Source: Malacoraja senta (taxonomy: Eukaryota). From it: a DNA stretch of 64,000 nucleotides. Position 1 is the first letter of the stretch. Each line of letters opens with the position of its first letter. Location of the stretch: the NCBI GenBank assembly GCA_038087875.1, contig CM075986.1, positions 15,934,001-15,998,000 of the forward strand. Direction: 5' to 3'. The notes beneath the pieces were generated by a model. The model ran no database searches and had not been told where the DNA came from. It saw only the letters and a list, made by a program, of their open reading frames with translations. The position numbers and the translations under genes are program-made. Positions 12,715-60,349 of this stretch are shown in pieces.

Positions 12715-14293
12715 CTTCCAAAGTGTTGTTCCAAAAACCATTTATCAAATACATAATATCAGGTTTAATAAGTCTCCTTGAATCCAGACGAAATGAATCA
12801 TAATCATAATAATACTTTATTAGCCAAGTATGTTTTGCAACATACGAGTAATTGCATTTGCCATACAGCCATACCAATAAAAAGCAACAGAACACACAAA
12901 ATACATTTTAACACAAACATCCACCACAGTGACTCCTCTACATTCCTCACTGTGATGGAAGGCGAAAAAAAGTTCAATCTCTTCCTTTCTTTGTCCTCCC
13001 GGGGTCGAGGGCCTCAAGCCTTCCGTTGATGGGACGATCTTGACTCCCGTAGCCGGCGGCTATACTTGAAAAATGTGGCACCTAGGCAGGGTGAGGCGGC
13101 CGATCTCGACATCATAGGGTCTTCCTTGCCGATTGGTGGGTTGAATTTGCCCCTTGCAGCCAGGGATCTGGAACTCTGAGCCGGCACATCTATTCCCAGA
13201 GCTGACTTATGAGGCTGACTTTGCAGGCCAATATCTTGGCTCCTCAGTTGCCTGGGCGGACGGTTCCGGTACTGTTGGACTCCTCTCGGAGGCCATGGCC
13301 TCTGTTGGTCTGGCAAAATGGATAATCCAGAAAGGCATGAACCAAGGATACCAGAAAATCGGTGGTGGATGTATAGTAAATTTAATGGCGGTCCCTGGCT
13401 GTTATTCCAGTTTGATTTATATGCATCATGTTACATGTAGTGCCTTTGACCTTGAAATAAATCACACAATTAACATCTAGCAAATGTACTGAACATTGAA
13501 CAATTTATAACTAGGACTCGGTAATGTTTTAAAATCAATTATACATTTTTTTTCCTCTCACTGTTAAATGTGTTTCTCCTCAAGAAACTCGCAAGATCTT
13601 TGAAATAATTTGAAAATCTCCAGGAAACTCTTTTCAAGGCTTTGCAGAAAGTTAAGGTGCATGGTACTGAACAGATTCCTCCACTTAGAACCAGCATAGA
13701 TTGGATTGGTCAAATGGCCACTGCCTATACCTCAGCAATCTTAGCAAAATGACAAGTTTCTCAGAATTAGTTCTGACTCAAACTGGGTTAATTATCCAAG
13801 TTTGAATTTTTCAGTGTACAGAACTGAAATAAGTGTCTGTTCGTCAATTTACATTAGCAGGGCTTTAGCCTTTGATAAACATGAGAAATAGATATTTCAA
13901 GAATGAAACTGAAATTTGGAACGTCGCCAAATCAATTTATGCTAATTTAAATTCTACGATGAATATGTTTTTGTTAGTCAAAGGAGACATGGCCAATATA
14001 TTGGGTCGGGTAACAAAATAGCCACGATTTCTCTGATTGGTGGAATGTGCCTGAGGGATTAAATTACCTACCTACACGTTTCCTTTTTTCTGACCCCATT
14101 GCCAACACCACATTCTGCACACCCAGTACTTAGCTGTATCATAACAATGTCACGTTCAGAGCTGACATAATTCCTCTAGTGTGAGAGCGACGTGTCTGGA
14201 ACCTCACTTCAAGTTCAGTACACTCTACACTATAATTTACATCATTTTTCAAGGGAGTATATAATTGTTTTACTTGCCTCTTTAAATTTAAAG

Positions 14294-14442
14294 CTCCAGG
14301 TGCACCTACCAACTGGAGGAGAGGAAAGCTGCTTGGACAGGGGGCATTTGGACGCGTCTACCTCTGTTATGACGTGGACACAGGAAGGGAACTTGCTGCA
14401 AAACAAGTTCAGTTTGACCCTGACAGCCTTGAGACCAGCAAG
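14294..14442 (+). CDS. MAP3K3: MAP3K3 kinase exon (149 nt; [50 protein letters not shown])
   Basis: aaag| and |gtaagt; Gly-rich loop GQGAFG and catalytic Lys. Confidence 0.98.
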
Positions 14443-16230
14443 GTAAGTACTGTGATCTGTAATCCTAGTTAATCAATAGAGTAAGGTGCAGTTTAAGACA
14501 CAGATTAATTGTTCAGCCAAAGATTGAAGATTTGATTTAAATCTTTGGCATATTAATAATCTCAAACCCAGAATCCTTGCGGGTCGTAGAGTTGGGATTT
14601 ATTTTCTTTACTTTTTTTTAAAAATTACTGCTGAAATAATCAGTATTATTGTGTTTTCCGTCTCCAATGTTCCTCTTAAACCTCAGTCATGACGCTCCAA
14701 CTAGCTATAATCTCATCATCTTAAATGAAGGCTCGACACAATCTTCTGCTAATTCCCACAGCCCCATCAATTTCTCTGCAGACATCCATGTTCTCTACCT
14801 CAATCGTCACCTCAACAACTCTGCCCGTATTGTTGGCCTTGATACCTCCCCGTAATTGAGCATATATTTCGTACATTCTAAAGGGGGAAAGGTTTATTAA
14901 AATAGCAAGTACCAATCAGTTATCTTTCTGTATAGCTAATAGGACTTGATGTTTCAATGTAATAAGTCGGCACTCTTGCTATTTGCAGTGGGATTGGAGT
15001 GGTGAAAGGTAGGATAGGTACGTCATCGAGGTTATCAGGTGGGCGCCCTCCTTCATCAAATTACCTGTGTCTTGGTACTTGGAAATATGCTGACCATTTT
15101 CATATCAATTCTGCCGACAAGGGAATTGCTTCCTGTCTAGAAGGCAGCATATAGATGATCAAGCAATTGATTAATGGGTTATTTCCCAACAAAAATTAAC
15201 AAAATTAAGTTATATCATAAAGGATTATCCCTAAAGGTTTTGTGGTTTATTTGTACAGTCAGAAGACATTGAAGTTTCCATTTTAATTCGATTGCTATTT
15301 AATTTCTCCAGAATTAGATGATTATGATTTATCAGCCCCCTTGTTGTGTCTTGGGATAACTAATTTATCCTGCTGTTTCCTTTTAAAACTGAGAAAATAT
15401 TTGGCACTTCCTGTGTGAGGGGAAAATGCACTGAGCGTTACATGCAGAGTGTTGGTGAATATAATGAGCTGCCAAGTCAAATGGCTGGATTTATACTTTG
15501 AGCTGAGGTGGCTTTATCTTCTCTGCAAAATCTACTGAGTCTTGTTGGAGCTTGGTTCAATATTTGATAGGCAGCCTCACCTAAGCTCCCAAATGCTCAT
15601 TTACCAGATTGTAATTTCTCTCTATCCACCTTATCTCTCTCTACCCACCCTAATTGTAACGGTTTGTTAAATGTGCACTCCACTTCATTATCAGAGCTTT
15701 CGGGAGGAATGACCATAATATAGACTTTTGCATAAGAAAGAACTGCAAATGCTAATTTAAATCGAAGATAGGCACAAAATGCTGGAGTAACTCAGCAGGA
15801 CAGGCAGCATGTGTAGGAAAGAACTGCATATGGTGGTTTAAATCGAAAGGGAAAAAAAATGCTGGAGTTACTGGACAGGCAGCATTTCTGGAGAGAAGGA
15901 ATGGGTCGACCTGAAACGTCACCCATTCCATGTACACTTTTGCACTGAGTTTGAAAATAGTAGGTAATTTGAAACTAGGGTCTTAAATCAAAACAAAGAA
16001 AATTTCGAAGGTATAGGGTGAGTTGTTTTTGGTAGATTGGGAAATGCCTTAAAAGGTCTAAGGGTGCATGGGGAATGGTAAACATTTGAAGTAATGTATA
16101 ATTGCAAAAATAGAGTAACATTCCTCTGAGGCACGAAAAAACAAAAGGAAAAGTACTCCATCCAAGGGTAATGAGAGAAATTAAACCCCTCTCATTCCTT
16201 TAAACCCTGGTGAATACAGGTCTATACGCC

Positions 16231-17143: not shown

Positions 17144-17275
17144 GAAGTAAGTGCTTTGGAGTGTGAGATACAGTTACTGAAGAACCTGCAGCATGAGCGG
17201 ATAGTGCAATACTACGGCTGTCTACGGGAAAAAGCAGAGAGGACTCTTTCGATTTTCATGGAGTATATGCCTGGG
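17144..17275 (+). CDS. MAP3K3: MAP3K3 kinase exon (132 nt; [44 protein letters not shown])
   Basis: actag| and |gtgagt; phase 0 to 0. Confidence 0.98.
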
Positions 17276-18536
17276 GTGAGTAAAAAAAATAAAGAGCTTC
17301 TCTTACAATTTCAAATCCATGGCATGTAACATTTGTGAATTGTGTTCATTAGGAAAATTGTGTGTAAAAGCACAAGGTGTGGTAAATAAAATGGTAAAAC
17401 TGCATGTACAAATAGCTATTTGGGATTGCTGTAACAAAGATATTAAAACGTAGCTATAAAGAAAAGTATTGGACTTATAATATTCCTGTAAAGAAATTCT
17501 GGAAAGATGAAGAAAGAAAGAGAATGAACATCCCATCCAGATTCAGATTAGTGTAGTATCATATACACCAGGGTGCAATGAATGTCATTGAAGCTCTTAG
17601 AGTAAATAATATACATTAATGATAAATACAATGAAGAGTACAAACCAGCATAATGGTGCAAGATTGTAGTGCAATCTGAAGTAGTGCAAAAGAATATTAA
17701 ACTACAACTACAGTTATATTAAACAACATAACTGAATGAGGTAAGGTTAAGTGTAAGATATGTGGCAACACCCCCAGGAAACAGTATAAAAAAGCTTTTG
17801 TTTAAGGAGGAACTGTAGATGCTGGAAAATCGAAGGTAGACAAAAATTCTGGAGAAACTCAGTGGGTGAGGCAGCATCTATGGAGCGAAGGAAATAGGCA
17901 ATGTTTCGGGCCGAAACCCTTCTTCAGAAAGAGCTGATTTGTTCAGGAGTTTGATGGCTGTGGGGAAGAAGCTATTCTTAAATCTGGATGACCAGCTTTC
18001 TGAAAAGGACCCGTTAATTCCTTCTCTTTGCTTCCTGTCTGCCAACCAGTTCTCTATCCATGTCAATATCCTACCCTCAATACCATGTGCTCTAATTTTG
18101 CACATTAATCTCTTGTGGGGGATGCACACTAATCTCTTGTGTTTTCCTCAAGATTCACAGTGAAAAAAAGACGTCGTTTTTCCTCAAGATTCTAGCATCT
18201 GCAGTTCCTCTTCTCCACCGTTCTCTCTCATGTTCCCATCAACTCCACCTTAAAAGCATTATTTTGTTTTGCAGCCTTCTACAATTCACTGCAAGGCATA
18301 AATCACATAGAAGTAAAATAAAGCAGTAAAACCCACTGAATCCATAACCGAACCCATAAATTATTTATGAAACATAAAATCATTTTAATCTTTCAAGCGA
18401 TCTCCACATGAAACCTGTAAAATTTGGCACTTTGCCATTGCGATGTGATGTGGGTTTCTTAAACTGAAGAATTGGGAAGGATGGTGGCCAAATCATTTAG
18501 AATGAATAGAATCGCTGCCAATTAATTGGTGATAGG

Positions 18537-38214: not shown

Positions 38215-39931
38215 TGTGGGTCCCTTGAAGACAGAAACAGGTGAATTTATTATGGGGAACAAGGAAATGGCAGACGAGTTGAACAGGTACTTTGGTGCTG
38301 TCTTCCATAGTGAAGACAGAACCAATCTCCCAGATGTACTAGGGGACAGCGGACCTAGGGTGATGGAGAAACTGAAGGAAATTCACATCAGTCAGGAAAT
38401 GGTGTTGGGTGGACAGATGGGGCTGAAGGCTGATAAATCCCCAGGGCCTGATGGTCTGCATCCCAGGGTACTCGAGGAGGTAACTCTAGAAATCATGGAC
38501 GCATTGGTGATCATTTTCCAATGTTCTATAGATTCTGGATCCGTTTCTGTAGATTGGAGGGTAGCTAATGTTATCCCACTTTTTAAGGAAGGAGGGAGAG
38601 GAAGCAGGGAATTATAGCCTGACATCAGTGGTGGGGAAGATGCTGGAGTCAATTATTAAAGATGTATTAGTGGCGCATTTGGATAGCAGTAACAGGATCG
38701 GTCCAAGTCAGCATGGATTTACGAAGGGGAAATCATGCTTGACTGATCTTCTGGAATTTTTTAAGGATATAACAATTAAATGGACAAGGGAGAGCCAGTG
38801 GATGTGGTGTACCTGGAGTTTCAAAAAACATTTGATAAGGTCTCACGCCGGAGATTAGTGGGCAAAATTAGAGCACATGGTATTGGGAGTAGGGTATTGA
38901 CATGGATAGAAAATTGGTTGGCAGACAGGAAACAAAGAGTAGGGATTAACGGGTCCCTTTCAGAATGGCAGGCAGTGACTAGTGGGGTACTGCAAGGCTC
39001 AGTGCTGGAACCGCAGCTATTTACGATATACATTAATGATTTGGATGAAGGAATTAAAAGTAACATTAGCAAATTTGCAGATGACACAGAGCTGGGAGGC
39101 AGTGTGAACTGTGAAGAGGATGCTATGAGGATACAGGACAGGTTGGGTGAGTCGGCGAATGCATGACAGATGCAGTATAATGTGGATAAATGTGAGATTA
39201 TCCACATTGGTGGCAAGAACAGGAAGGCAGATTATTATCTGAATGGTGTCAGGTTAGGAAAAGGGGAAGTACAACGAGACCTGGGTGTCCTTGTACAGCA
39301 GTCATTGAAAGTAAGCATGCAGGTACAGCAGGCAGTGAAGAAAGCTAATGGCATGTTGGCCTTCATAACAAGAGGAGTTGAGTATAGGAGCAAAGAGGTC
39401 CTTCTGCAGTTGTATAGGGCCCTGGTGAGTCCTCACCTGGAGTATTGTGTGCAGTTTTGGTCTCCTAATTTGAGGAAGGACATTCTTGCTATTGAGGGAG
39501 TGCAGCGTCGGTTCACGAGGTTAATTCCCGGGATGGAACGACTGAGCTTGTATTCACTGGAATTTAGAAGGTTGAGAGTGGATCTTATAGAAACATATAA
39601 AATTATTAAGTGAATGGACGCGTTGATGCAGGAAACAAGTTCCCGATGTTGGGGGAGTCCAGAACCAGCTGCCACAGTTTAAGAATAAGGGGTAGGCCAT
39701 TTAGAACTAAGATGAGGAAAAACGTTTTCACCATGAGAGTTATGAATTTGTGGAATTCTCTGCCTTAAAAAGCAGTGGAGACCAATTCACTGGATGCATT
39801 CAAGAGTTAGGGCTAGCGGAATCAAGGGATATGGGGAGAAGGTAGGAACGGGGTACTGATTGTGGATGATCAGCCATGATCACATTGAATGACGGTGCTG
39901 GCTCGAAGGGCCGAATGGCGTACTCCTTCAC
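38215..39931 (+). mobile_element. CR1 LINE, 1.7 kb, frameshifted RT
   Basis: KSPGPDGLHPRVL, QHGFTKGKSCLT, SGVLQGSVL, KFADDT, HLEYCVQFWSP in several frames; CR1 3' end. Confidence 0.95.
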
Positions 39932-45128: not shown

Positions 45129-45448
45129 CCCAACACCCCAGCCCCAGCATTTCACGCAGGAATCTTTTATCAAATATGAGGAAAGGAATTTGTGTCCCCC
45201 TCAAACATGTTCCTCCATTCAGTTGGATCATAACTGATCTTAACATTAATTTTTTTGTTCCACCTTTGCTTCAACGGGGGAAAAAACTGCTTATTTCAGT
45301 TGTTAAATTATCAGGAGCGACAGCCTTTTGAAGATGAAATCACGAAAGATGCCGCAAGTGTCTGAAGCACCTCTGATCGGTAGTGTAACGTATTGGTCAG
45401 TATTGTGTTCAGAAAGCTGTGCTTAGTAGCTACCCTGTCAGATGGCTG

Positions 45449-45585
45449 CTGCTTCTTGCGTATGGCGTGCACAGCCTAAAGTTGTAGGTCAACTTGTTTT
45501 ATTTGATCTATTTGTTTGTGCACGTCGGGTTGATTTCATTAGTCGAAACAGGGTGGACCACGCAAAGGTTTCAATCTCCCAACCC
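45449..45585 (-). mobile_element. HDV-like-ribozyme-headed short retroposon, copy 1 (ribozyme degenerate)
   Basis: Flanked by perfect TSD tgtcagatggctg (45436-45448 / 45586-45598); homologous to 56098-56236; gaagcag tail on minus strand. Confidence 0.85.
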
Positions 45586-46926
45586 TGTCAGATGGCTGAA
45601 ATGAGGGTACTGGATGAAACGGTGTAGAGGAAACCTTGACTTGCTAACTTTGCATCTGAAGCTGGAACCGTGCAAAGGCAGCCTTATTTTGTCCATCTTG
45701 TAAACTGTTGGGAGGGGAGGGGGGGAAATAAATAATTTGCTAATGGCACATGCAATCAGCTTGTGATCTAACTTCACCGCAACTTCGGGAAATGGCCTGC
45801 AGTGGCTTTGGATTGTTTGATGTGGAACTAGATCAAGAAAAATGCCATGTTTAATTTCTGATCGTCAGAAGCAGTGATAGAAATAGTTGTCCTATTCGTA
45901 CCTACATTTTGAAGTAGGAAAAATAATAATTCCCATTACACTTCACTATCACCTGAATATAATGCATGTCTAATCTCTAAAAAGGTGAAAACTGAGAGGT
46001 GGTCTGCCTGAGATGTATAAAACGCTGAAAGGGTTTATTAATAGGATGGATTGCAGAGATGTTTATACTTGAGAAAAAATGCAAAACCAGAGTACAAAAT
46101 GTACTCTAAATATAAACAAAAAAATCGACAAAGGAGACCATCAGGAACTTTTGCCACAGAGAATGATGAGAATATAAATTCAGTGTCAATTGGTTGAACA
46201 AATGGCACAGATGCATTTAAGAATAAACTAGATTGCTATGATGGCAAAGGTTAGGAGAATATATTGTTAAAATTACATAAGTCAGTTTGAAGGTGCCTTA
46301 GTGACGGATGAACTTTGCAGATACCAAGTAAATCAATGGCCATTTTCATTATACCTTCTTTGCAAACTTGCAGGCTTTTATTAAATAACATGTGCAAGCT
46401 TTGTGTAGAGTTCAAAACAGTTGTGATTAAACAGCCTCGTTGTTTCACATGAGTTATAAGATCTATGAGGAGACATTGTATTATGCCAAATGTTGAATCA
46501 CAGTCTAAGAAGTGTTGCAGTCAGTTGTCTTCTTGATGTGCGGAAATTGCGGTATCCAATTTGTGTGAAACAAGTTGCTTGCTGAGGGATAAATATTGAC
46601 TCTAGATCACCTGCCTGTGTGCTTTGAATTTGTGCCATCCAATCTTTTGCATCTTTTTGAGAGAACAGGAGGGGTCTTGATGCTCCAAAGGTCAGTATCC
46701 CTCAGTACTGTACTGACTGTCAGTTTGGATTATGTGTTGAATTGTCTATGGGACTTTAAATCACTGCCTACCTCTGGAGAGAACTACCAATAAACTAAGG
46801 TGCAGCTAGATCACTCATGATCTGTTATTAAAATTGAGGTTAATAAAATGTCACTTTAAATCGGTTCCACTATTTGTTGGGTTTGATTTGTGTGATACAT
46901 ATTTTGTTCTTGTGTTTACACGACAG

Positions 46927-47031
46927 GAAGGAGATGCAGAAGGAGAGCCGTTCGATGATGAAGAATTTGAAGGTTATGAGGAAGCAGACAGACCTTCCAG
47001 CAGAAGCAAAGATCCAATTAAAATCGTTAAT
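46927..47031 (+). CDS. CCDC47: CCDC47 coding exon (105 nt; [35 protein letters not shown])
   Basis: gacag| and |gtaagc; matches CCDC47 [19 protein letters not shown]...KDPITIVD. Confidence 0.95.
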
Positions 47032-47375
47032 GTAAGCACCTAGTATTAATGACACTACATTTTATCATCTACTGCTTACAACATTTGGGCATTGCTCCAG
47101 GGTAGCTCAAGAGACAAAACTGCAATTCAGTCCGGAATCAAATTTCAGGAGCTGAGGTGCTCAAGCTGGATTCCCAAGATGTCAGCTCATGTGTACTAGG
47201 ACAGCATGCATGATGGTAGAGATGGGTTGGGGGAGGAATAGCCAGGAATTCTCCTACTGTCGCCACCATGCACCTTTCCCTTTTTCTTCACTGAGCGGAG
47301 TATAAGGTGCTGAGAGCCTGTGGCAGAATGTGTAGTCCAGTGCTGGTGGTAGCAGCAGGATATATACAGCTAGGC

Positions 47376-47660
47376 TTTAGACTTTAGAGATACCGCATGG
47401 AAAAAGGCCCTTCGGCCCACGATGTCCGTGCCAACCAGCGATCACCCTGTACACTAGCACTATCCTACACACAATTTACAGAAGCCAAATAACCTACAAA
47501 CTTGTATATCTTAGGAGTGTGGGAGAAAACGGGAGCACCCAGAGAAAACCACGCGTTCACAGAGAACATATAAATCGTGTACAGACATTACCCATAGTCA
47601 GGATTGAACCCAGGTGTCTGCCGTCGTAAGGCAGCAACTCTACGGCTGCGCCGATGTGCT
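47376..47660 (-). mobile_element. tRNA-headed V-SINE (HE1-like)
   Basis: Collinear with 12422-12714 and 44832-45128. Confidence 0.8.
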
Positions 47661-48216
47661 GTCCACACTGGGCTCGCAGAGGAATTTAGTGCGATGGGGC
47701 ATCTTGGTCTGCATGGATCAGTTGGGCTGAAGGGCCTATTTCCATGCTGTATGATTCTAAACAGCATTGTCCAAGGACAGCAGGTCAAGACCCACACTCC
47801 TAATGCGCAAACTGCAGAAATGACAATACTGAGCCCGAGGGCTAGGCTTCCATGGGAGATTGGGTGAGGGGAGATGTGGGGACAGGGTCCCTTGGAATAT
47901 GGTATTGGAGAAGGCCGTCTTTAAAAATTAAAGGTTAGGTTGTTCAGAAAGTAGCAATCTGTTCATGCAAGCTTAGTTTAGAATAAACCTAAAGACTGGA
48001 GAAGGAACCCTGTCTCAAGTTCTTAGAGCCAAGGAAAGTTTGGAATTTCATGGATTCTTTCAATGCATGCTTGTGTAGTGTACAGAGAATGTAGTTAATT
48101 GAAATGATGATACAAATCCAGTTAGGATCATGCTGCCATAAGGATGCTGTAATTACAATGCTGGATTCATTTAATTTTGTTGAATTAAATCATGTTTATA
48201 ACTGCTTGATTTCCAG

Positions 48217-48391
48217 GTTCCTCATCATCTACAGAACAGCTGGGAGAGCTACTACTTGGAGATTCTGATGGTGACAGGCCTTTTGGCTTACATCATGAAC
48301 TACATCATAGGCAAAAACAAAAACAATAGACTGGCTGCTGCTTGGTTCAACTCTCACAAGGAACTGCTGGAGGGTAACTTTTCCCTAGTTG
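48217..48391 (+). CDS. CCDC47: CCDC47 coding exon (175 nt; [58 protein letters not shown]), includes TM helix
   Basis: tccag| and |gtgagt. Confidence 0.98.
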
Positions 48392-48742
48392 GTGAGTCCC
48401 CGATTCATTGATTATTTTGGGATGTGGTTTATTCCAAAGACGGTGTCTGCGGTCTGTAACCGAGAGTGTTCTCTACCTGCATCTATGATAGTTACAGAGG
48501 TGTTGTTCTACTGGAAACCATATTGACCCTCTGAAGAAAGGTCTCAACCCACATGTTCTCCAGAGATGTTGCCTGATCTGCTGAGTTACTCCAGCGCTTT
48601 GTGTCCCTTTAACTACTAAACTATCTTTACTTTTCAATGTTAGGAATTGCGCTGGAATTTATTTCAAGTTGCAGTGTATAATAGTTTATTTTTAGTTTTG
48701 CACTGTAAGATGCAGCAGCTGATGTAAGTTCTTTATTTGCAG

Positions 48743-48864
48743 GGGATGATGGGGTTAATAAAGAACCCACCAGCACAGGGAAGCTGAACCAGGAAAATGA
48801 GCACATCTACAATCTGTGGTGCTCGGGGAGGGTATGTTGTGAGGGAATGCTAATTCAGCTGAAG
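48743..48864 (+). CDS. CCDC47: CCDC47 coding exon (122 nt; [41 protein letters not shown])
   Basis: tgcag| and |gtgagg. Confidence 0.98.
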
Positions 48865-50268
48865 GTGAGGACACTACTTAAATTTAGCCTCAATAGGGGA
48901 GAGTTAGACAATCTGTGAATAAACCATTGCATATTTTGGATGTTTTAAATGTATATTCTTTCATAATTTTCAAATTAAGAGCTATCTGTTATGTGTTCTA
49001 CCCAGCTCTAAATTTGTGTCATTGACAAACGGGTAAGTGGTGAAGAAAGCTGGCGGAGAGTTGTGCCCTGTACAATGTGTCACCAAATACCCCCTGGCAC
49101 ACTTGGCAAAGGTTAAATGGAGTAATCGCCTTGTATTCTGCCATTAAAATTTGTAAGACAAGTACAGCATGAGAGAAACTAATTATGCACCACATTATCG
49201 CACTCCCCTGACCCCATACTCCTTTATTTCAAATAAATCATAGTTGTGACTTTCTGGTAGTTGGATTAGATATTCATGCATTGGAGTTCAATAAGAAGTT
49301 GGAGTCTGGCAACGGCAGTAATGCCTACACTGTCCTGTTGAGTTGGGACAACCAAAAAATGTATTTGTGATTGCCTACTTTTAATTTACTGGGCCTCTTG
49401 GATAAATCTCAAGTAGCTGCGTACCAGTATATGGCCTTAAAGTGCAGGAAATCATGTGGGAAGCATGTAAAAAAAATAATGGGAAGAATGCTATTTTAGT
49501 GCCAATGTTTGAAAAAGACATGAGGCGGTTCCTTGGTATTCTGTTAAACCCGTGGCATGTTTTGAAGTTGCTAGAACCGAACTGAGCCAGTTTAATATCT
49601 TATTCCTAAGAATGCTGCCACTCTAAAGGCAGTAATTTCTCACTGCTGACCTAAGATGATATCCCTGACATGGGAGGAGGGTTTTCATTTTATCCCTTGG
49701 GGCTGAATTCAGACAGCTGTTAAAAGAAGTCAGCTTCAGTGAAAGGATGGAATGCTAATCAGTCCACTGCTTGTCAGCATGTAGCTCTGCCAGACTACAA
49801 TCAGAGTAGGATCGAGAGATTGTGCACTGCCAATTCTGTATGAAATATCAGTTTGTAATGGAACAAAGAACTGCAAATGCTGCAGTCTGTAATAAGAACA
49901 GGGTACATTGGAGCCAGTATTTTGTCAGCATTTGAAAAAAGAAACCCTTAAGTTTCAGGTAAAATCATGAGTGTTCCATTTCAATCAACTAATGTCTGAA
50001 GCCAGTGGTGCCTAAATTGATAAAGTGAAAATGTGTGCTGCAAAAAGTTGAATAAATTGGGAAGTGATTACACAGGCCACTACCTAAGGATTCCAGTTGT
50101 AAGGATATTTGTGATGTTTGCCTTGAAGGCAATTGCATCTCATTGTTAAAGTAGTACTACTCCCCATTTTCAAATTGTGCAAGGAACTTTGAATGTGGGG
50201 AAGATGCATTTTTTTTCCAAATGAAAATACCTTTATGTAATCTTTTGCCGTTTGGATTTTGTTTTTAG

Positions 50269-50334
50269 TTTTTGAAACGGCAGGATCTCCTGAATGTACT
50301 TGCAAGAATGATGAGACCTGCCAGTGACCAAGTG
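50269..50334 (+). CDS. CCDC47: CCDC47 coding exon (66 nt; [22 protein letters not shown])
   Basis: tttag| and |gtaagc. Confidence 0.97.
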
Positions 50335-52419
50335 GTAAGCATAATATTAATCTTCAATAACATTATTATGGTTTCTCTATAATATCGATCAAAGCAAATT
50401 CAATTCTAAGTTTTCTAGGGTCTCAAAACTTAGAGAAGTTACTGTTGTCAGTTGCTTAGGGAAAAATTGTGAGAAAGGAATTCCATTACAGTAGCTTTTA
50501 AATCAATGCCAACTCTCCATTCACAAAATCTTTCTCCAGATCTCCCAGAGAATAATGATTTCCAAGGCCCATTAGGCTGCAGCGTCCACTGATAATACCT
50601 ATTTTAACCTATTCCCCAACTATTCCAAAATCAAAATCTTGAGGGTATTTAAGTTTCACACTGATCTTTAAAGGTAACAGGATACATTGAAAAGCCTTTG
50701 GGGAGGGTGGAGGATGTGCTTAGGATCCTTATTTTTATTAAGAGGCACGCAGTACCATTGTAGGACAGTTATGTTAAATTATAAATCATTAGCTGAACAA
50801 CACAGTGTTATGTTCGATTCTGGGTATTATAGCATTCACTAGAAAATATGCCACGGTCTTAGAGAAGCAAAAGAGTTAAGAGTGATACTGAGGAGAAAGG
50901 AGCAGATAATTTGGCAGACTGGAGTTATTTTCATTAGAGTAAGTAAAACTGGACATCTGAAGAATTCAAAATCTTCCAATAGTTTCAATACAGTAAATAT
51001 GGAGAGTTATGCCCGAAGGCTGGTTGCTTAAACTGTTTGGTGAAAGCACCAGTAATGGTGTGGAATATTTTTTTCCATGGAGCTACTCAGGTCTCAAATA
51101 CCTCAATTCTCTCATTCCTCCTCCTTTCCTTAACTGACACCCTTCTGACTCCATTTCTTCTCTAGCTTACACTGCCCATCTGCCAATCAATTCTCCTTCT
51201 CCTGTAACTACTTATCACTTGCAAAGCTTTGCCCCGTGCGCACCTCCTCCATCTTTCTCCCGTTAACTGTCGGAAGGAAGGTCCCGATTAAAACGTCATC
51301 TGTCTGTTCCCTCCACAGTCGCTCCCCAACCAACAGGATTTCTCCAACACTTAGCATTTTCTCATGATTCACGCATCTGCAGTCTCTTTCGTCTACATAG
51401 AAACATTCCCTTTGGCCCACAATATCTATGCCAACCACCATGCCTGTCTATATTAATCCCACTTTCCTGCATTCATTCCATTTCACTCTATGCCCTGCTC
51501 ATTCAAGTATCTATCAAAATACCTCATAAAAGTTGTTACAGTTTCTATTTCCACCAGTTCATTCCAGAGTTGTTGTGATCTGCAAGATACCGTCTGAAAG
51601 CATTCGATGATAACCTTAAAACAAATTGGATAAATATGACCCGCATCAGCATTGAATTATTTGTTTCCATGATCAAATTAAATGGCGGTGCTGGCTCGAA
51701 GGGCCGAATTGCCTACTCCTGCACCTATTGTCTATTGTCTATTGTCTATTGTTTGGTTACATGGTTTCTTTATTTTGCACCACTGTAATGTTGCTTCTTT
51801 CTATCCCTATCATAATCACGAAAGATTAATTGTATGACACAGTATGGTGGTAAAGAAGAGATTACATTACATGACCAGTAAATCAGGGTTAAACTAACAA
51901 TCTAGGGGCCCAAATTCAAATCTTATCACTGCAGCTTGTGAAATTTAAATTCAATAAATAACTTGGAATTTGGCAAAACAACAACTCGTCTTAACAATGG
52001 CAAACATAATATCTACTAAATTCTTTTAAAAGCCCATCTGGTTCACCAATATTACTCAGAGGAGGAAACCTGCAGTATTTTGCTTTTTGTTAATCTCATT
52101 ATATTATCTATTTTTGTCCTTGTCCAAGTTTCTGCCTTTTAAAACTCTCAAGCAAGTACTCCATCCCCAATTATTATTCAGCATCAAAGAAATATCTTCC
52201 ATTACTAACGGGCAGTAATTTGTGAAAAGTGTTTCTTCCTGAACAGTCTGATGTGATACATTAATTTTCCAACCCCACATTCTGAATTTCTCCCATCTTT
52301 TTCACCTCAGTTTATTGTGCTCATTTTTGTCTTTCTTTTTTTAATTTTTTTATTTTTTTTAATTCTCATTTTTGTCTTTCAAAAGTAGAAATTAGAGTTT
52401 GTTGTGATTTCTTCTGTAG

Positions 52420-52521
52420 CAAATCAAAGTAACCATGAATGAAGAAGATATGGACACCTATGTATTTGCCATTGGGTCACGGAAGGCCATGGTCCGAATG
52501 CAGAAGGAAATGCAGGATTTG
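52420..52521 (+). CDS. CCDC47: CCDC47 coding exon (102 nt; [34 protein letters not shown])
   Basis: tgtag| and |gtatgt. Confidence 0.98.
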
Positions 52522-54149
52522 GTATGTATTTGCACAAGGAATAATGAACAGTGTCTGACTGCTACCACTAATGAGCAACTTGTTTACTATGGTCTATTCC
52601 CAGGCGATCAGATTCTTACTATTGCAACAAGCATTCTGCTTGGCGTTCTATGCACAACGTAGTACACTATTACTGACATTCGATTGATAGCTTTTAAGCT
52701 TCTGATAAATAGATATATTATCTACACAATCAGTTCTGCAGATGTGGCTCAAAGACTGATAAATTGTGTTAAGTGAATCAATTATGGTCTGAATTTGAGC
52801 AATGAATCTGATCCAGTCACCAAAGGGAAACATAAGGAGGCAAATTAATTGTTGTCTTTATTGTTTGCAGGAGGTTTTTAATACAGGAGCTAAGAGGATA
52901 CCTTTAAACAATTAAGCAGGGCCTTTGTGGCACAAACCTGGAATATTGGCTACATCAAAAAATTGTAGATGCTGGAAATATGTAATATATAAACAGAAAA
53001 CGATGGAAATACTCAGCAGGTCAGGCTACATCTGTGAGAAGAGAAACAGGGTCGACTTTTCAGGTTGAAGTCCTTTGGTTGGAATATTGCACGCTGTTTT
53101 GGTCTTCATATCTCAGATGACATACTTAGCATAGGGAACCAAACTGTTTCCTGCACTCACAGGGCTTTTGTATGAGGAGAGATTGGACCGATCAGACTTG
53201 TATTCACTCCAGTTTAAACGAATGTGAGAAGATCTAATTGAAATGTACAAAATTCTGGTGCAGCTCAACTGGCTGGATGCAAGGAGGATGTTTCACCTTG
53301 CTACAATATCCAGGACCGGCTTCAGAAAGCGGGATAAGACATTGAAGACTGAGGAGAAATTACAGCACTCACAAAGTGGTGAATCTATCTACTTTTCTAG
53401 AGAGATTAGAGTCATTGAATATGTTTAAGAAAGGGTAGATGCATTTCTATGTACAAAATATATCAAGGGAAATAGGGAGAGTGCAAGCATGGTATTAAGC
53501 TATTTTTCTTTTTCTTTTCAGACGTTTTATAAATACTATAGAATCTATATTATTGATTGGCAAAGCAGATGTGGGAGCCTTGATCAGCACTTCTTAACAT
53601 TGTAGCATAACAGGAATTGAGTAGATTCCTGAATACCTGAATGTTTTCCTTTGAATTAGAGAATGGAAATCATTGAGCTAGCTGCCCTTCAATAGTCTCT
53701 GCCACTAAATACAGATCGTAAGCAGGTTAATACATGCAAAGATACATGTTTGACAGGTGGAACCGCTTGCAGAGTTTTCTGTCATACGATAACCATTGCT
53801 GGAAATAAAAATATGGACTGTCTGGCCTTTGATACTAATACTTAAATAAGGGCAGGTGGTGTGAGCATATTCCTGATTATGTGCAATCCCCGATGTTTTT
53901 AGTGGATCGAAAGACATTTGGACAGATAGGAAATAGGATAGGAAATGTTTACAGAGCTGTGGGCCAAAAGCAGGCATATGGGACGAGACCATGCTTGGTT
54001 AGCAAAGACAAGGTGGAACGAAGGGTCTGTTCCCATGCTGGATACCTCAGTAACTCTAATAACTTACTGCTGACCTTCCAATCTTTTAACTGGAGCACTA
54101 TTTCTTGCACATATGGTCACAGTTAGAATACCATCTGCTTTGTTTTCAG

Positions 54150-54260
54150 AGCGAGTTCTGCAGTGATAAGCCCAAGTCAGGGATTAAGTTTGGGCTTCCT
54201 GATTCGCTCTCTATCCTGTCTGAAATGGGTGAGGTCACAGAAGGTATTTTGGACAATAGG
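54150..54260 (+). CDS. CCDC47: CCDC47 coding exon (111 nt; [37 protein letters not shown])
   Basis: ttcag| and |gtgagt. Confidence 0.98.
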
Positions 54261-54931
54261 GTGAGTATGCTGAAATGGGTAATGAGTTGAACTTGTATAA
54301 AAGCTAACAACATTTCTTATCAAACTCGGTCTTAGTTTGAGATTTGTTCCCAGAGCTCAGTTATGCATGTACACGTCTATGTTCAAGTGTGTGTGGAATT
54401 ATTGAATTTTCCATTGACGCTCTGCACAATGACCTGAGATAAGGCTGAAGCCTTTGTGACCATCTTTAGCCAGAAATGTCAATTAGATATTCCATCTCTC
54501 CTTTCTCCTGGGATCTCTACCGTCAGTGAAGCTAATCTTTAAAAATTGAAAAGGCTTTGCAAAGTGAGATAGGAAGAGGTCAGAGGCAGCATCCTCTTGT
54601 TAGAGTGAAAGGCATTGCTGGCAAGATTGGGGGATCTTGGCTGATGAACGATATTGAGGGCGTGGTAAAAAAAAAAGGTGGCAAATGTTAATTATTGGCA
54701 GTTGGGATCCATCAAGTGCCTTGAGGAAAATAGGTGATGTAGGAGTACATTAATGATGGAAACTAGGGCAAATATGGTATATAACTTAAAGACTCAAAAC
54801 ATTCTTTAAGTATGTTAAAAGCAAAAATTTAACTAGGGAGATTGTAGGTCCCTTAACGATTTGTTGTAGTAACCTTTTTTGATGCCCCATGCTGTTTATC
54901 TCTGTGACACGTTTTTTCTTTCTGAACCTAG

Positions 54932-55017
54932 ATGGTGCACTTCCTTTCAAATCACGCCGATAAGATAGAGTCTGTTCATTTCTCGGACCAGTTTTCTGGG
55001 GTGAAAATTATGCAAGA
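54932..55017 (+). CDS. CCDC47: CCDC47 coding exon (86 nt; MVHFLSNHADKIESVHFSDQFSGVKIMQE)
   Basis: cctag| and |gtaagt. Confidence 0.97.
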
Positions 55018-56097
55018 GTAAGTGTCAATAAGATCTGCATGACAAATTGTGCTTAACGTTTTGTAATAATCAATTATTGCTATTGGGAATCCTGCTTCAG
55101 TAAAGATTTTTTTAAAAGAATTTTCATTGAAACACTTTTCTGGGTTAGAATTTGTAGTTTATTTTGCACTGGAGTGGAACAAGATTGTGTATATTATAGC
55201 AAAAAGTAAACTGATTGAACTCGGTGGGCCAGGCAGCATCTGCAGAGAGGAATGGATGGTTGACTTTTTGGGTTGGCACCCTTCATTCAGACTAAAGGAG
55301 TCTAAACTTTAGAGGAGTTTTTGAAGAGGGGATATATACAGTATAAAGAGGCGAGGGGAGAGGGTGAGAACTGGCAAGTGATAGTTTGATCCAGGTGCAA
55401 GGGGAATGAATGACAACTGTTTTCAGAAGGGGAGGGAAGGGCAAAGATAGTGACAGAGGCTGGGAGGTGATAGGTAGAGACAACTGGCTTTATGTGGTGG
55501 AATCTGATAAAGGACAAATAGAACCAAATAAGAGAGGGATGATAGGCTGATGGGAGCAGTGGGTGAGAGTATAGGGTACCCAATGGGAGGATCTGCCAAT
55601 CAATCTCTCCTCACTTGATCCGTCTGTCATGTGCCACCACTTGCCCCACTCCTCTCCTCTTTATATTGGCTATCTTGCCTGTCTCCCCTCTACTCTTTCA
55701 GTCCCGATGAAGACTCCCAACCAGAAGTGCCATTTGTCCATTTTCCTGCACTCATGCACCCTTGAGTTCCTCTACCAATGTATTTTTCGCTCCAGATTCC
55801 AGCATCTGCAGTTTCTTGTGTCTACATTATTTGTATTGGGGCCATGGAAGTGAGATTCGTTTGGAGCCCAGGATTAATAGTTTTTCCAGCCTGTGGGTCT
55901 GGAAATATCTGGCAAACTGTCAGAACACACATTTGCAAAGCTGCCTTCCATGATCTCTGCATCTCTTTATGAACATTTCTGGCCTATGAATATTGCCTCT
56001 TCCTCATAGAATTATTGGTGTCACTAACTTCTTGGTTTAATAATGTATTGGTCCCTACATGATGGCATCCCAGCATGATTTGTTGCTGAGGGTACGG

Positions 56098-56236
56098 ATC
56101 ATCTTCTTCGTGTGTATGGCGTGTACAGCCTAAACTTGTAGACACCAAAACACTTCATCTAAATGTTTGTGCACGTCGGGATGATTGCATTAGTCGAAAC
56201 AGGGTGGACCACGTGAAGGTTGCAATCTCCCACCCC
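56098..56236 (-). mobile_element. HDV-like-ribozyme-headed short retroposon, copy 2
   Basis: Same 5' end and similar length as copy 1; gaagaagatgat tail on minus strand; weak TSD candidate gagggtacgg / gaggccacgg. Confidence 0.85.
56183..56236 (-). ncRNA. Minimal HDV-like (CPEB3-type) self-cleaving ribozyme, 54 nt, predicted
   Basis: GGGGUGG-GA-GAUUGCA-ACC-UUCACGU-GGU-CCACCCU-GUUUCGA-CUAA-UGCAAUC: P1 7 bp with G1-U wobble, P2 7 bp, P3 3 bp, canonical L3, catalytic C in J4/2. Confidence 0.85.
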
Positions 56237-56813
56237 GAGGCCACGGTGCACAGTTCATGCTAATCACATAGTTACAGAGGTCTCTGATACATCCTCTATG
56301 TCTGAAATAGACTGATTAGTGGTACAAACATGGTACCATCTCCTCACATGGTGGAAAAAGTACCTAGGTTCCGAATGACTCCCGGTGAGTGCGCGTGTCA
56401 GACAAGTGCAGCATTGGGCTTGGCTGTAATCCAGCCCATGCTCTTTATTTGGAGATATGAAGTACAGGAGTATGCTGTTTGTCTGAAATCTGCAAGGAAA
56501 CATGCACTCCTTTGCGAACAATAAGATGGAATGAACTTCCTCTGACTAACCTCTAACAAAAGTGGAATATTAAACCCATGCTGGAGCACTTCCAGTGGTG
56601 GCCTCTGAAAATGTTCTTTGAACCAGCTTGTTTCTTCCATGTTTTGGAATGGAGGGCGTAGTGAGGAGGTGGTGGATTTCAAGTGGGCCAAGTTAAAACA
56701 TTTGTTTTAATAGTCATTTTTTAATTCTTTGTCAGTGCAGAATAATTGCAATGCTTAATTTGTTGACTGCCGGTAGTCAAAATTGGTTGAATTTCTCTTC
56801 TTTTGTTATTCAG

Positions 56814-56872
56814 AGAGGGTCAACCCCTCAAGCTGCCTGACACTAAAAAGACACTACTGTTTACATTTAATG
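56814..56872 (+). CDS. CCDC47: CCDC47 coding exon (59 nt; EGQPLKLPDTKKTLLFTFN)
   Basis: ttcag| and |gtaagt. Confidence 0.97.
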
Positions 56873-57100
56873 GTAAGTGTAGGGTAATTTTTATTGCCAT
56901 TGATTCACGTAGCTGGGAGCGAGCCTCCATGCTCCCCTGGATCGGGAGATGATATGCATGCTCGGTGAGTAGTGTGCTTGCATGCCACTGTCAACACAGC
57001 TATGTTGACTGTGACTGACTTGGATCAGCTGAATTTTAGGGTGTCACAGACTCTGAAGATGGCCACCCTGTAAATATAGTAGTATAAAGAACAGATGTAG

Positions 57101-57835
57101 GGAATTGAAGAATGCAGGTGAACAGAGGGATCTTGGAATAACTGTGCACAGTTCCCTGAAAGTGGAATCTCATGTAGATAGGGTGGTAAAGAAAGCTTTT
57201 GGCGTGCTGGCTTTTATAAATCAGAGCATTGAGTATAGAAGTTGGGATGTAATGTTAAAATTGTACAAGGCATTGGTGAGGCCAATTCTGGAGTATGGTG
57301 TACAATTTTGGTCGCCTAATTATAGGAAGGATGTCAACAAAATAGAGAGAGTACAGAGTAGATTTACTGGAATGTTGCCTGGGTTTCAGCAACTAAGTTA
57401 CAGAGAAAGGTTGAACAAGTTAGGGCTTTATTCTTTGGAGCGCAGAAGGTTAAGGGGGGACTTGATAGAGGTCTTTAAAATGATGAGAGGGATAGACAGA
57501 GTTGACGTAGATAAGCTTTTCCCACTGAGAGTAGGGAAGATTCAAACAAGGGGACATGACTTGAGAATTAAGGGACAGAAGTTTAGGGGTAACATGAGGG
57601 GGAACTTCTTTACTCAGAGAGTGGTGGCTGTGTGGAATGAGCTTCCAGTGAAGGTGGTGGAGGCAGGTTCGTTTTTATCATTTAAAAATAAATTGGATAG
57701 TTATATGGACGGGAAAGGAATGGAGGGTTATGGTCTGAGCGCAGGTATATGGGACTAGGGGAGAATACGTGTTCGGCACGGACTAGAAGGGTCGAGATGG
57801 CCTGTTTCCGTGCTGTAATTGTTATATGGTTATAT
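57101..57835 (+). mobile_element. Young 5'-truncated CR1 LINE (open frame 57105-57758)
   Basis: 217-aa uninterrupted ORF2 C-terminus (LVRPILEYGVQFWSP, FFTQRVVAVWNELP); (gttatatg)n tail. Confidence 0.95.
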
Positions 57836-58401
57836 AGATGTCAGGCCCTTAAGAAGCAGCCAGTGTCATCTCATTGAGAGCTGGTACAGAGACAGCACAG
57901 GAGCTGGCCTAAGATTTGCATGTAAAACCCTTAAACAGTGCAGATGTGATCCCCACAGTTGCTATAGCCTTTAACTGAGCAAATGTCTCATCGACCTCTG
58001 GACCTCTCTGCGTAGCCTTCCTGTGAAGCAGAGTAGTCCATGACCCAGCAGTCCTGTTGCTGCACTCCCTTGATAGGTGTTAACAGTTCACACAAAGGCA
58101 TTTTTAACTGTTTCTAGATTTATAATAACATTTTAAAATAGACTAAATGGATTTAAAAATACTACTTTTAGTTTAAATGGTGATTTAACAAAAGCTTCAA
58201 TATTCAGAAAAATAAAGAAAGCATCTTCACTTTATGAACTGCTGGCAAAAATTACACTTCAGTCAGTGATTTAGAAGAATGTGAAAAAATCCCATTGGCC
58301 CTGTCCCGAGGTTAAATTTGACCAATTTCCTTGTCTTATTTTTGTATATGTAACATGATTTATTGTGATTGAGCTTGGGTTGTGTATCTGTTTCTCCGCA
58401 G

Positions 58402-58511
58402 TGCCTGGAATCGGGAACACTTATCCAAAGGACATGGAGTCCTTGCTACCATTAATGAATATGGTTATTTACAGCATTGACAAGGCAAAGAAGTATCGTC
58501 TCAACAGAGAG
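58402..58511 (+). CDS. CCDC47: CCDC47 coding exon (110 nt; [37 protein letters not shown])
   Basis: cgcag| and |gtaaga. Confidence 0.98.
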
Positions 58512-59170
58512 GTAAGAGTACAGTGCATCATCTTTGCTTATGTCTGATTTATCTGCAGATCAATATCAGTCAATGGCCATCTGTTGTACCAATTTTAATG
58601 CAATGAGACAACTAGTAAGATAAATGAACTCAAAACCTTAATTAACACTTAGAAGACATTTGGACAGGTGCCTGGATAGGTAACTTTTACAGGGATATGG
58701 GCAAAACGTAGGCAAGTGGGACTACTGTAGGTGGGGCATCTTGGTCAGCACAGGCAAGTTGAGGCCGAAGGCAAAGAGTGATCATGCTATATCACTGGCC
58801 GACTGGATTAAGGTAAATCCAAATGTGTTTTATAAGTATATTAAGGACAAAAAGAATAACCAGGAAAAGAGTGGGGACCTTTAGGGATAATGGGCAATCT
58901 GTGTGTGCAGCTGGAAAGTGTAGTTGAGATTCAAAATTAATACTTTTCATTGGTATTCACAAAAGAAACAGTTGGCAGTTACAGTGAAAAGGAAAGTGAA
59001 ATGCAAATGTATAAATATAGAAGAGGTATTTGATGTCTTGGTGGTGTTAAAGGTAGATAAACCCACAGGACCAGGTGAGAATTATCCCAGGCTCCCATCA
59101 GTGTAATACATGTGACGAAGAAGGTGGCAGTGTCTGAATCATGTAATCTTCTCCACTACTCCCAAAACAG

Positions 59171-59338
59171 GGTAAGCTGAAAGCTGATAAAAATCGTGCT
59201 CGTGTGGAGGAGAACTTTCTAAAGATGACGCATGCACAGCGTCAGGAAGCTGCTCAGATTCGCAGGGAGGAAAAAAAACGGGCTGAAAAAGAAAGAATTA
59301 TGAATGAGGAGGACCCAGAAAAACAACGCAGGCTTGAG
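59171..59338 (+). CDS. CCDC47: CCDC47 coding exon (168 nt; [56 protein letters not shown])
   Basis: aacag| and |gtacgg; coiled-coil region. Confidence 0.98.
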
Positions 59339-60349
59339 GTACGGAATAATCCTGAGTTGACAATTATGTGATCAGGAACTAACCAGTGGTATCACTTAAT
59401 CCAACCAAGGAATGTCAGCAGCAAGGAGAGTTACATTCTTGGTAGGACGTAAATGACATCTTATGTTGATGTTGCCCATCGATTCTGTGGAGGTTGCATT
59501 ACACAGTTCCTCGTGTCAGTGCTTACAAAGTAGGAGCACGAGCAGCACATTCAGATCCTCAAGCCTGCTCAGCCATTCAATAGGATAATGTCTGATTCAT
59601 TGCAATCCTTCCTCTGCATTTCCGCCAATTCCCTGTGAGAATCTTATCTCCCTCTGCCTTAATAAAAACATTCAAAGAAACTGCTACCCCTGCCGTTTGA
59701 GGAAGCTGTAAAGATGCAACCTTTGATAGAATACAGCTTAACTGCATTAAATAGACAACTATTTTTGAACATTAAAAGCAAGTTCCAAAATCTCCCATGA
59801 GAGGATTTTCCCCACGTTCATTGTATTGAAATCCTTCAACAGAGTCCCCTCTATATCCCTTAACTTCCCCCCTTCCGTGCTACCACTACATTCTTGTTTG
59901 GTCCCCCACTTTAGTGGTTTCCTATATCATGGTGTTGTGGTCATTAGTTTATCCACCCTGCAGCCTTGGTTAATCGCTATTGTCATTTCAGAACTGTTTG
60001 CACATATGCACAGTTGGTTTGCGCACATTGTGATCCCACAAATAATAATGTGGTGATGCTCAGATAAGTTAAGGTTGAGAGAATAACTTTGGTGGGATGT
60101 GGAAGAGGAACTGAGGGAATTCTCACCAAATTGTGGCAACAGATTGAGGAGAAACAGTGCTTTATTTCATCTGAAAGGCTACTTCAGTGCTGTACTACTC
60201 CCCCCAGTATGTGTCCGTCTAGGTATTGAGCTGAAATCTCCATTGTAGAAGAAGACCCCAACTCTCTGTGACATATGCCCAGTTTGTTGCAGGGTTTCAT
60301 TTCTCCCTTGTGTCCCTTGCATGGTTTAATTGTTTCCTATTCCTCACAG

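Follow-up and report, generated by a model that had tools for sequence, protein, structure and literature searches.

The repeat and its host gene

We analysed a stretch of 64,000 nucleotides (nt) from the skate Malacoraja senta (the window; GenBank assembly GCA_038087875.1, contig CM075986.1, positions 15,934,001 to 15,998,000 of the forward strand), in which a 139-nt repeat on the minus strand, here called copy A, begins with a 54-nt fold of the kind found in the self-cleaving ribozyme of hepatitis delta virus (HDV). The Pfam profile PF07946 (CCDC47) matches four plus-strand exons at successive profile positions (Table 1), and since such exons stand on both sides of copy A, the repeat lies antisense in a CCDC47 intron. 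The original prediction had read the two copies present in the window as antisense to this gene, which holds for copy A; copy B lies upstream of the first PF07946-matched exon, where no intron was confirmed. The idea that sense copies, which would cut pre-mRNA, have been purged has these two copies behind it, both on the minus strand and one of them, copy B, possibly outside CCDC47, too few for a conclusion on orientation bias.

A second copy within 11 kb had been predicted, and BLAST found exactly one other copy in the window, copy B (match 45585-45449, minus strand, 82% identical). The similarity between the two begins exactly at 56236, the first base of the fold (G1) and of the repeat, and runs to about 56103; the match in copy B likewise starts at G1. 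Each copy measures 139 nt and closes with a short, simple tail rich in purines. Their heads are 92% identical and the remainder 67%, and the 3' box of copy A, searched for across the window, occurs only in these two copies. Copy B is flanked by a perfect target-site duplication of 14 bp, GCCATCTGACAGGG, the last GGG of whose 5' member overlaps the first three G's of the element, which indicates microhomology at the 5' junction. The duplication around copy A matches at 8 of 10 positions. Target-primed reverse transcription typically leaves a well-defined unit that ends in a simple 3' tail and stands between duplications, and both copies show this pattern, in agreement with the prediction that the fold heads a short retroposon.

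Table 1. Coordinates of the repeat copies, of the ribozyme fold and of the CCDC47 exons in the window
Feature	Position	Strand	Basis and remarks
Copy A, complete 139-nt retroposon: ribozyme head, conserved linker, variable middle, 3' box, short purine-rich tail	56098..56236	minus	BLAST, duplications, contig ends
P4-less HDV-like ribozyme fold, 54 nt	56183..56236	minus	pairs by script, descriptor, RF02682, theta comparison
P1 5' strand GGGGUGG, G1 at 56236	56230..56236	minus	pairs with 56201-56207; no family variant of at least 2%
J1/2 GA	between 56230 and 56227	minus	direct reading
P2 5' strand GAUUGCA	56221..56227	minus	7 Watson-Crick pairs with 56183-56189; no family variant of at least 2%
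P3 (ACC/GGU) and L3 UUCACGU	56208..56220	minus	script; theta and mouse Cpeb3 comparison
P1 3' strand CCACCCU	56201..56207	minus	script; family consensus G at 56205 (U5-G), copy A has A (U5-A)
GU (P1.1 partner of L3) and 5-nt linker UUCGA in place of P4	56194..56200	minus	script
J4/2 CUAA, candidate catalytic C at 56193	56190..56193	minus	aligned to RF02682 and theta ribozymes
P2 3' strand UGCAAUC	56183..56189	minus	script
Conserved linker after the ribozyme; with the ribozyme, the 73-nt head common to nearly all family members	56164..56182	minus	contig depth
Subfamily-specific middle, conserved 3' box TTTAGGCTGTRCACGCCATAC (56114-56134) and short tail GAAGAAGATGAT	56098..56163	minus	comparison of copies A and B
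Copy A 5' target-site duplication CCGTGGCCTC	56237..56246	minus	script
Copy A 3' target-site duplication CCGTACCCTC	56088..56097	minus	script; 8/10
Copy B, decayed 139-nt copy	45447..45585	minus	BLAST, script
Copy B 5' target-site duplication, 14 bp, perfect	45583..45596	minus	script
Copy B 3' target-site duplication	45433..45446	minus	script
CCDC47, part around copy A	48202..59368	plus	PF07946
CCDC47 exon	within 48202-48408	plus	PF07946 E 2.4e-15, profile 1-49
CCDC47 exon	within 48709-48915	plus	PF07946 E 2.3e-05, profile 55-87
CCDC47 exon	within 52420-52659	plus	PF07946 E 3.4e-06, profile 116-162
CCDC47 exon	within 59147-59368	plus	PF07946 E 1.9e-11, profile 257-319

Two features of the element body were recorded in addition. 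A long-range stem pairs CGUGCACA with UGURCACG of the 3' box (56169-56176 with 56121-56128 in copy A) and encloses the variable middle; it is perfect in copy B, at the same positions, and has one mismatch in copy A. This stem is a candidate recognition structure for a partner reverse transcriptase. Further, a reading frame that starts 2 nt past the ribozyme is open in both copies to a common TAG (ending LQV* and LQL*; 56129-56180 and 45475-45529, minus strand), which would fit an element body derived from the C-terminal end of an open reading frame of a long interspersed element (LINE), and is not significant alone.

An HDV-like fold without P4

Read on the minus strand from 56236 to 56183, copy A consists of GGGGUGG, GA, GAUUGCA, ACC, UUCACGU, GGU, CCACCCU, GU, UUCGA, CUAA and UGCAAUC, in this order. 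When the pairs were scored by script, these segments gave an HDV-like double pseudoknot of 54 nt that lacks the helix P4, with every helix and junction (P, paired region; J, joining region; L, loop) exactly where the original prediction had listed it. The strands follow each other as P1-P2-P3-L3-P3'-P1'-(P1.1/P4)-J4/2-P2', which is the nested HDV order. P1 has 7 bp and begins with the wobble G1-U36, followed by G2-C35, G3-C34, G4-C33, U5-A32, G6-C31 and G7-C30. A P3 of 3 bp closes an L3 of 7 nt in which the positions U20 and G25 are present, and J4/2 has the form C-N-A-A, with C44 as the candidate catalytic base. The cut is predicted immediately 5' of the G at 56236, a position to which the boundary of the repeat at G1 points indirectly.

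The prediction had called the ribozyme intact, and this is true of copy A, the ribozyme letters of which happen to be undamaged. Copy B is decayed: P1 has a U4/C33 mismatch, P2 has two adjacent mismatches (G-A and A-G), and L3, which reads UUUGCGU, is altered at the P1.1 base. We considered and rejected compensation as an explanation of the P2 changes, as adjacent G-A and A-G mismatches are not Watson-Crick pairs and one sequence is no evidence of it.

An alternative helix of 7 bp was also seen, between nt 1-7 and nt 53-59, that would compete with P1 and with the end of P2 (56230-56236 with 56178-56184 in copy A; 45579-45585 with 45527-45533 in copy B). The family consensus carries a G4/A56 mismatch in this helix, and a private change completes it in each copy, A56 to U in copy A and G4 to U in copy B. 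Its completion is probably chance, and the helix could represent an inactive conformer.

Comparison with known ribozymes and retroposons

A close likeness is to the minimal ribozymes known as drz-Mtgn and as the theta ribozymes of gut phages (Kienbeck et al. 2024, PMC10879173), with which the skate head agrees in the length of each region: 7 in P1, 2 in J1/2, 7 in P2, 3 in P3 and 7 in L3, then 3 in P3', 7 in P1', 2 in P1.1, 5-7 in the linker, 4 in J4/2 and 7 in P2'. ACC, ACGT, GGT and CTAA occupy the same places, and the totals are 54 nt in the skate and 55 nt in theta, so that the architecture without P4 which distinguishes the minimal ribozymes is reproduced region by region. With numerals for strand lengths, a theta example from the supplementary tables of that study reads 7-AA-7-ACC-T-CC-ACGT-GGT-7-GG-GTAACG-CTAA-7, and the skate head, cut in the same way, 7-GA-7-ACC-T-TC-ACGT-GGT-7-GT-TTCGA-CTAA-7. 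The linker is 5 nt long in the skate and 6 in this example, 5-nt linkers being present among other published theta examples. Differences are found in L3 (UUCACGU in the skate, UCCACGU in theta) and in J1/4 (GU against GG), and together they leave the skate P1.1 with one pair instead of two. The commonest core 13-mer occurs 1439 times in the theta tables (PMC10879173), from which the skate 13-mer, one base off, is absent.

The surroundings differ from those of theta ribozymes, which are defined by a cut site at most 5 nt from the 3' end of a tRNA in a phage genome: ARAGORN found no tRNA in 45300-56500, and the skate fold lies in a vertebrate intron, at the head of a retroposon. In that study nearly 99% of theta and minimal drz sequences come from phages, the eukaryotes covered being 'complete' genomes (protists), human and mouse, and the role of minimal P4-less HDV-like ribozymes in eukaryotes has been left open (PMC10879173).

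Among the 4227 Rfam families, the one that best fits an 81-nt segment with the fold is RF02682, the F. prausnitzii HDV ribozyme. Its model aligns end to end (1-74) to 56236-56183 in the register of our fold, with P3 as aCC/GGu, an L3 ending in ACGU and CUAA in place, and the 20-nt P4 segment of the model corresponds to 5 nt here; the score, considered below, is under threshold.

In the mammalian CPEB3 ribozyme GU follows P1, as in the skate, and P1.1 is weak. The original prediction had taken the L3 of CPEB3 to be identical, and a published mouse Cpeb3 primer, GTTCACGTCGCGGCC, placed 18 nt from the cleavage site, agrees with it, since UUCACGU falls at nt 20-26 from the cut site in both. CPEB3 differs in having P4 and a P3 of GCG/CGC, and in occurring once, at a conserved site within a CPEB3 intron, with no mobile element around it. 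RF00622 (CPEB3) gave no match, and the skate fold, with CCDC47 as host gene and as part of a multi-copy repeat, has only L3 in common with it.

As a mobile element, the skate repeat resembles the R2 short internally deleted elements (SIDEs) of Drosophila and the NARTc, RIME and SIDER elements of trypanosomatids, which are noncoding, have a ribozyme at the 5' end and a LINE-type 3' end, and are mobilised in trans (PMC3414825, PMC3383444, PMC4035085, PMC5786205). Their ribozymes, however, have P4 and are longer (77 nt in L1TcRz), and R2 SIDEs are specific to ribosomal DNA and low in copy number, whereas the skate family is dispersed in a vertebrate genome, about 139 nt long and present in roughly 10^4-10^5 copies. 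HDV-like ribozymes also stand at the 5' ends of the autonomous LINEs R1, R2, R4, RTE, Ingi/L1Tc and LOA, and they process the 5' ends of R2, RTE, L1Tc and internally deleted derivatives (PMC5786205); bipartite non-autonomous derivatives are on record for RTE, Ingi, Vingi and R2 (PMC5786205, PMC3414825, PMC3383444), and Vingi is missing from the published list of clades with a ribozyme (PMC5786205). The role that we propose, release of element RNA from a co-transcript, would be the same as in these LINEs, the skate element being non-autonomous.

A head in the manner of classical short interspersed elements (SINEs), transcribed by RNA polymerase III (Pol III), was rejected: ARAGORN found no tRNA and Rfam no tRNA, 5S, 7SL or small nuclear RNA, even at E up to 10, as expected from the prediction of a promoterless head.

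An abundant family with a sharp 5' boundary

The locus is present in public sequencing runs from at least eight coded organisms. We aligned the contigs of eight runs, from organisms A, B, D, F, G and H plus one further source, to the element at 80% likeness. The four DNA runs (X1, X2, X15 and X19, from organisms A, B, F and H) contain 5390, 7274, 3860 and 5908 matching contigs, respectively, and the other four (X21, X22, X26 and X25, from D, G and the further source) 594, 504, 61 and 64. A high copy number, at which the original prediction had hinted from two copies, is thus borne out.

In all eight runs the similarity ends at 56236, with far fewer ends at 56235, 56237 or 56238. The number of contigs in which unrelated sequence begins exactly at this position is 212 in X1, 435 in X2, 290 in X15, 364 in X19, 67 in X21, 57 in X22, 12 in X26 and 13 in X25. 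Since the flank consensus reaches an agreement of just 0.34-0.42, these continuations belong to many different loci, and the thousands of contigs with unrelated flanks are those of a dispersed retroposon. At their other end related contigs stop near 56098-56103.

Summed depth over the head amounts to 1.5-4.6 million in X1, X2, X15 and X19, against 14-48 in single-copy flanks, from which a crude estimate of 10^4-10^5 copies follows; the two copies in the 64 kb of the window, or about one per 30 kb, agree with it. The depth stays in the range of 10^5-10^6 down to 56164 (nt 73) and then drops about a hundredfold. A 73-nt head found at about 100 times the depth of the 3' half of copy A itself means that subfamilies with differing middles and tails keep the same head.

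From organism H, the most distant organism with the locus, a contig of 1804 nt covers 56132-56260 with 9 mismatches; insertion A is therefore old and predates the split of the species. The head of copy A differs from the family consensus at 2 of 73 positions, and its 3' half is more diverged. An old insertion with a well-kept head could also be taken to mean that copy A was co-opted at this locus, for instance to cut a CCDC47 antisense transcript, and was conserved for that reason. We regard this as scarcely probable, because subfamily differences in the 3' half account for the contrast between head and tail, no evidence for an antisense transcript was found, and thousands of other copies look alike.

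Hundreds of other copies have AT-rich sequence on the 5' side of G1, its plus-strand consensus being rich in A, which suggests a preference for AT-rich targets. In run X1 a few contigs (depth 36-47) join 56236 to 56195 via 19 other letters, a sign that partial copies may lie nested or in tandem at other places in the genome. An exact-pattern scan of metagenome contigs of the Joint Genome Institute (JGI) for the conserved core gave zero matches.

Variation within the family

We tabulated family variants with a threshold of 2% and depth-weighted shares, taken from assemblies that lose rare variants. At this threshold no variant was found in the 5' strand of P1, in both strands of P2, in the 5' strand of P3 or at G25, G37-U38, C44, A46 and A47. 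In L3, nt 24 changes from C to U in 5-16%, while G25, the second base of this CpG, remains under 2%, and this imbalance suggests that G25 is constrained; in the linker, CpG transitions at nt 41 and nt 42 reach 3-7% each, symmetrically, as for an unconstrained CpG. Within P1', nt 31 (56206) changes from C to U in 5-7%, resulting in a G6-U pair, and nt 32 (56205) is G in the consensus (49-73%) and A in copy A, both of which pair with U5. The sole pair-breaking change is U to C at nt 29, at 0.3-2.8%.

In J4/2 the second base is free, nt 45 being U, G (6-24%) or A (2-4%). The active site of the HDV ribozyme requires of its J4/2, C75/G76/A77/A78, a pattern of this kind, and the fixed C, the free second base and the two fixed A's of the skate family read as that same requirement.

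A retroposon that may trim its own 5' end

We consider it likely, from the sequence evidence above, that copy A is an old copy of a very abundant, promoter-less, non-autonomous retroposon without long terminal repeats (a bipartite LINE/SIDE) of skates and their relatives, headed by a minimal P4-less HDV-like ribozyme that would be self-cleaving. The fold probably lets the element trim itself from host transcripts in place of a promoter. In the mechanism that we propose, a source copy would be transcribed within a longer host or read-through transcript, and the ribozyme would fold co-transcriptionally and cut 5' of G1, so that the upstream RNA is discarded and the element RNA begins at G1. A partner LINE would then supply in trans a reverse transcriptase that recognises the 3' box and tail, and target-primed reverse transcription by this enzyme would carry on to the extreme 5' end of the RNA, leaving target-site duplications of 10-14 bp.

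A number of results weigh against this reading, and the first group of them would be expected if a GC-rich repeat head happened to fit an HDV-type descriptor by chance. Our descriptor called for G1 paired to U, a P1 of 7 bp, a P3 of 3 bp with a loop of 6-8 nt, P2 directly before P3, a G after P1', a C in J4/2 and at most 80 nt between P1' and P2'; on both strands of the whole window it matched one site only, the fold of copy A. In its loose version, with a P2 of at least 5 bp and G-U pairs permitted, 53 of 200 dinucleotide-preserving shuffles matched as well, and as a fold taken alone at so unspecific a stringency is unconvincing, we used instead a strict version (G1-U as the sole wobble in P1, a Watson-Crick P3, at least 7 Watson-Crick pairs in P2), which only 3 of 1000 such shuffles matched; this last result counts against chance.

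Rfam returned zero matches at gathering thresholds over the whole window, and a search of 701 nt with E allowed to reach 10 gave only chance matches to microRNAs and long noncoding RNAs. On the 81-nt segment RF02682 scored 17.5 bits (E 0.13) against a gathering threshold of 44, so that the fold stays below the curated scores of the HDV-type models; these models contain P4 and cannot score pseudoknots. Nor is the nested-fold energy better than that of shuffles, with z from 0.2 to 0.8 for two heads (0.2 for the head of copy A) and from -0.6 to 0.8 for heads and whole elements. The minimum-energy fold of the 54 nt of copy A recovers P1 and P3, and this energy is blind to the P2 pseudoknot, so the method does not discriminate.

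A stronger argument than the match itself is position, in that the fold starts on the first base of a repeat with thousands of copies. The active-site letters of theta and RF02682 stand in register, moreover, and variation within the family spares the positions that pair or take part in catalysis. The boundary, the copy number and these letters together make chance a very unlikely explanation.

A second group of results concerns activity. P1.1 of copy A comes to one Watson-Crick pair, C22-G37, with U21 and U38 unpaired, and P4 is missing, the 5-nt linker UUCGA joining P1.1 to J4/2; on both counts ribozyme activity could be weak. The head might accordingly be taken for a structured module without catalysis, such as an internal promoter for Pol III or RNA polymerase II, or a fold that protects the 5' end or binds reverse transcriptase, in which case the end at G1 would reflect initiation of transcription. 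Cleavage is a prediction from the sequence, and nt 37-47, GTTTCGACTAA, are loosely B-box-like. The first 77 nt of L1Tc are both promoter and ribozyme (PMC3383444), so the two functions need not exclude each other. We nevertheless judge a non-catalytic head unlikely: besides the negative ARAGORN and Rfam searches already described, no A box was seen, and the conserved letters coincide exactly with those in the active sites of minimal HDV-like ribozymes of proven activity (ACC, ACGU-GGU and C-N-A-A with N free), which a promoter would not explain.

The variation in the family bears on the self-cleaving retroposon that we favour with some reserve too. The tolerated changes at nt 31 and nt 32 are also expected CpG transitions, rare variants drop out of the assembled contigs, and with helices so nearly invariant there is no two-sided covariation. 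In the runs labelled 'RNA?' the head occurs in 61-64 contigs, some of which run through G1; all of these are assembled contigs, and two of the runs are probably DNA, so that RNA starts cannot be read from them and they allow no conclusion on transcription or 5' ends. Finally, a partner LINE was not found in the window by BLAST, by the descriptor or by the search for the 3' box.

Novelty and implications

A literature search (HDV-like ribozymes with SINEs or non-autonomous elements, skates and cartilaginous fish; Dfam and Repbase lay outside its scope) found no published description of the family, which the original prediction had not recognised as described either. It also found no publication in which Vingi or cartilaginous fish are connected with a ribozyme of this type, and a 2026 ribozyme-discovery preprint does not mention the family. 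R2 SIDEs and NARTc already have this design, and the variant with a P4-less head in a vertebrate appears to be new. Almost all reports of HDV-like ribozymes of the minimal, P4-less type concern phages and metagenomes (PMC10879173), and here such a fold forms the conserved start of a vertebrate retroposon as short as a SINE.

If the head is active, it would give short vertebrate retroposons a third route to a defined 5' end, besides Pol III heads and LINE promoters, and sequence variants of a 54-nt ribozyme would be available from nature by the tens of thousands. Intact copies in introns should then show a bias in orientation, and the CPEB3 ribozyme might be connected with those of LINEs through this family. 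Gene insertion based on retrotransposons is a practical field in which compact ribozymes of this kind are of interest as 5' modules (PMC11331408, PMC13708176).

A bolder extension, which we think rather improbable, would be that skates hold about 10^5 theta-type minimal HDV-like ribozymes whose heads are active in sense intronic copies, shaping insertion orientation and the integrity of pre-mRNA genome-wide, and that the same lineage of LINE-borne ribozymes, marked by the L3 UUCACGU, was the source of the mammalian CPEB3 ribozyme. Were there about 10^5 theta-type copies, a vertebrate genome, and not gut phages, would be the largest known reservoir of the class.

Other features of the window

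We rejected the LINEs of the window as the partner, since the decayed reverse transcriptase at 38.2-39.6 kb and the CR1-like fragments have neither head nor tail in common with the repeat. The former extends over 38216-39613 on the plus strand, with a match to PF00078 at 38780-39166, and LINE-like open frames without a Pfam match were seen at 57057-57755 (plus strand) and 17881-18147 (minus strand); these likewise lack the head and the tail of the repeat. Exons of a protein kinase (Pfam PF00069), consistent with MAP3K3, are found at 14236-14469 and 17144-17326 on the plus strand, the same strand as CCDC47.

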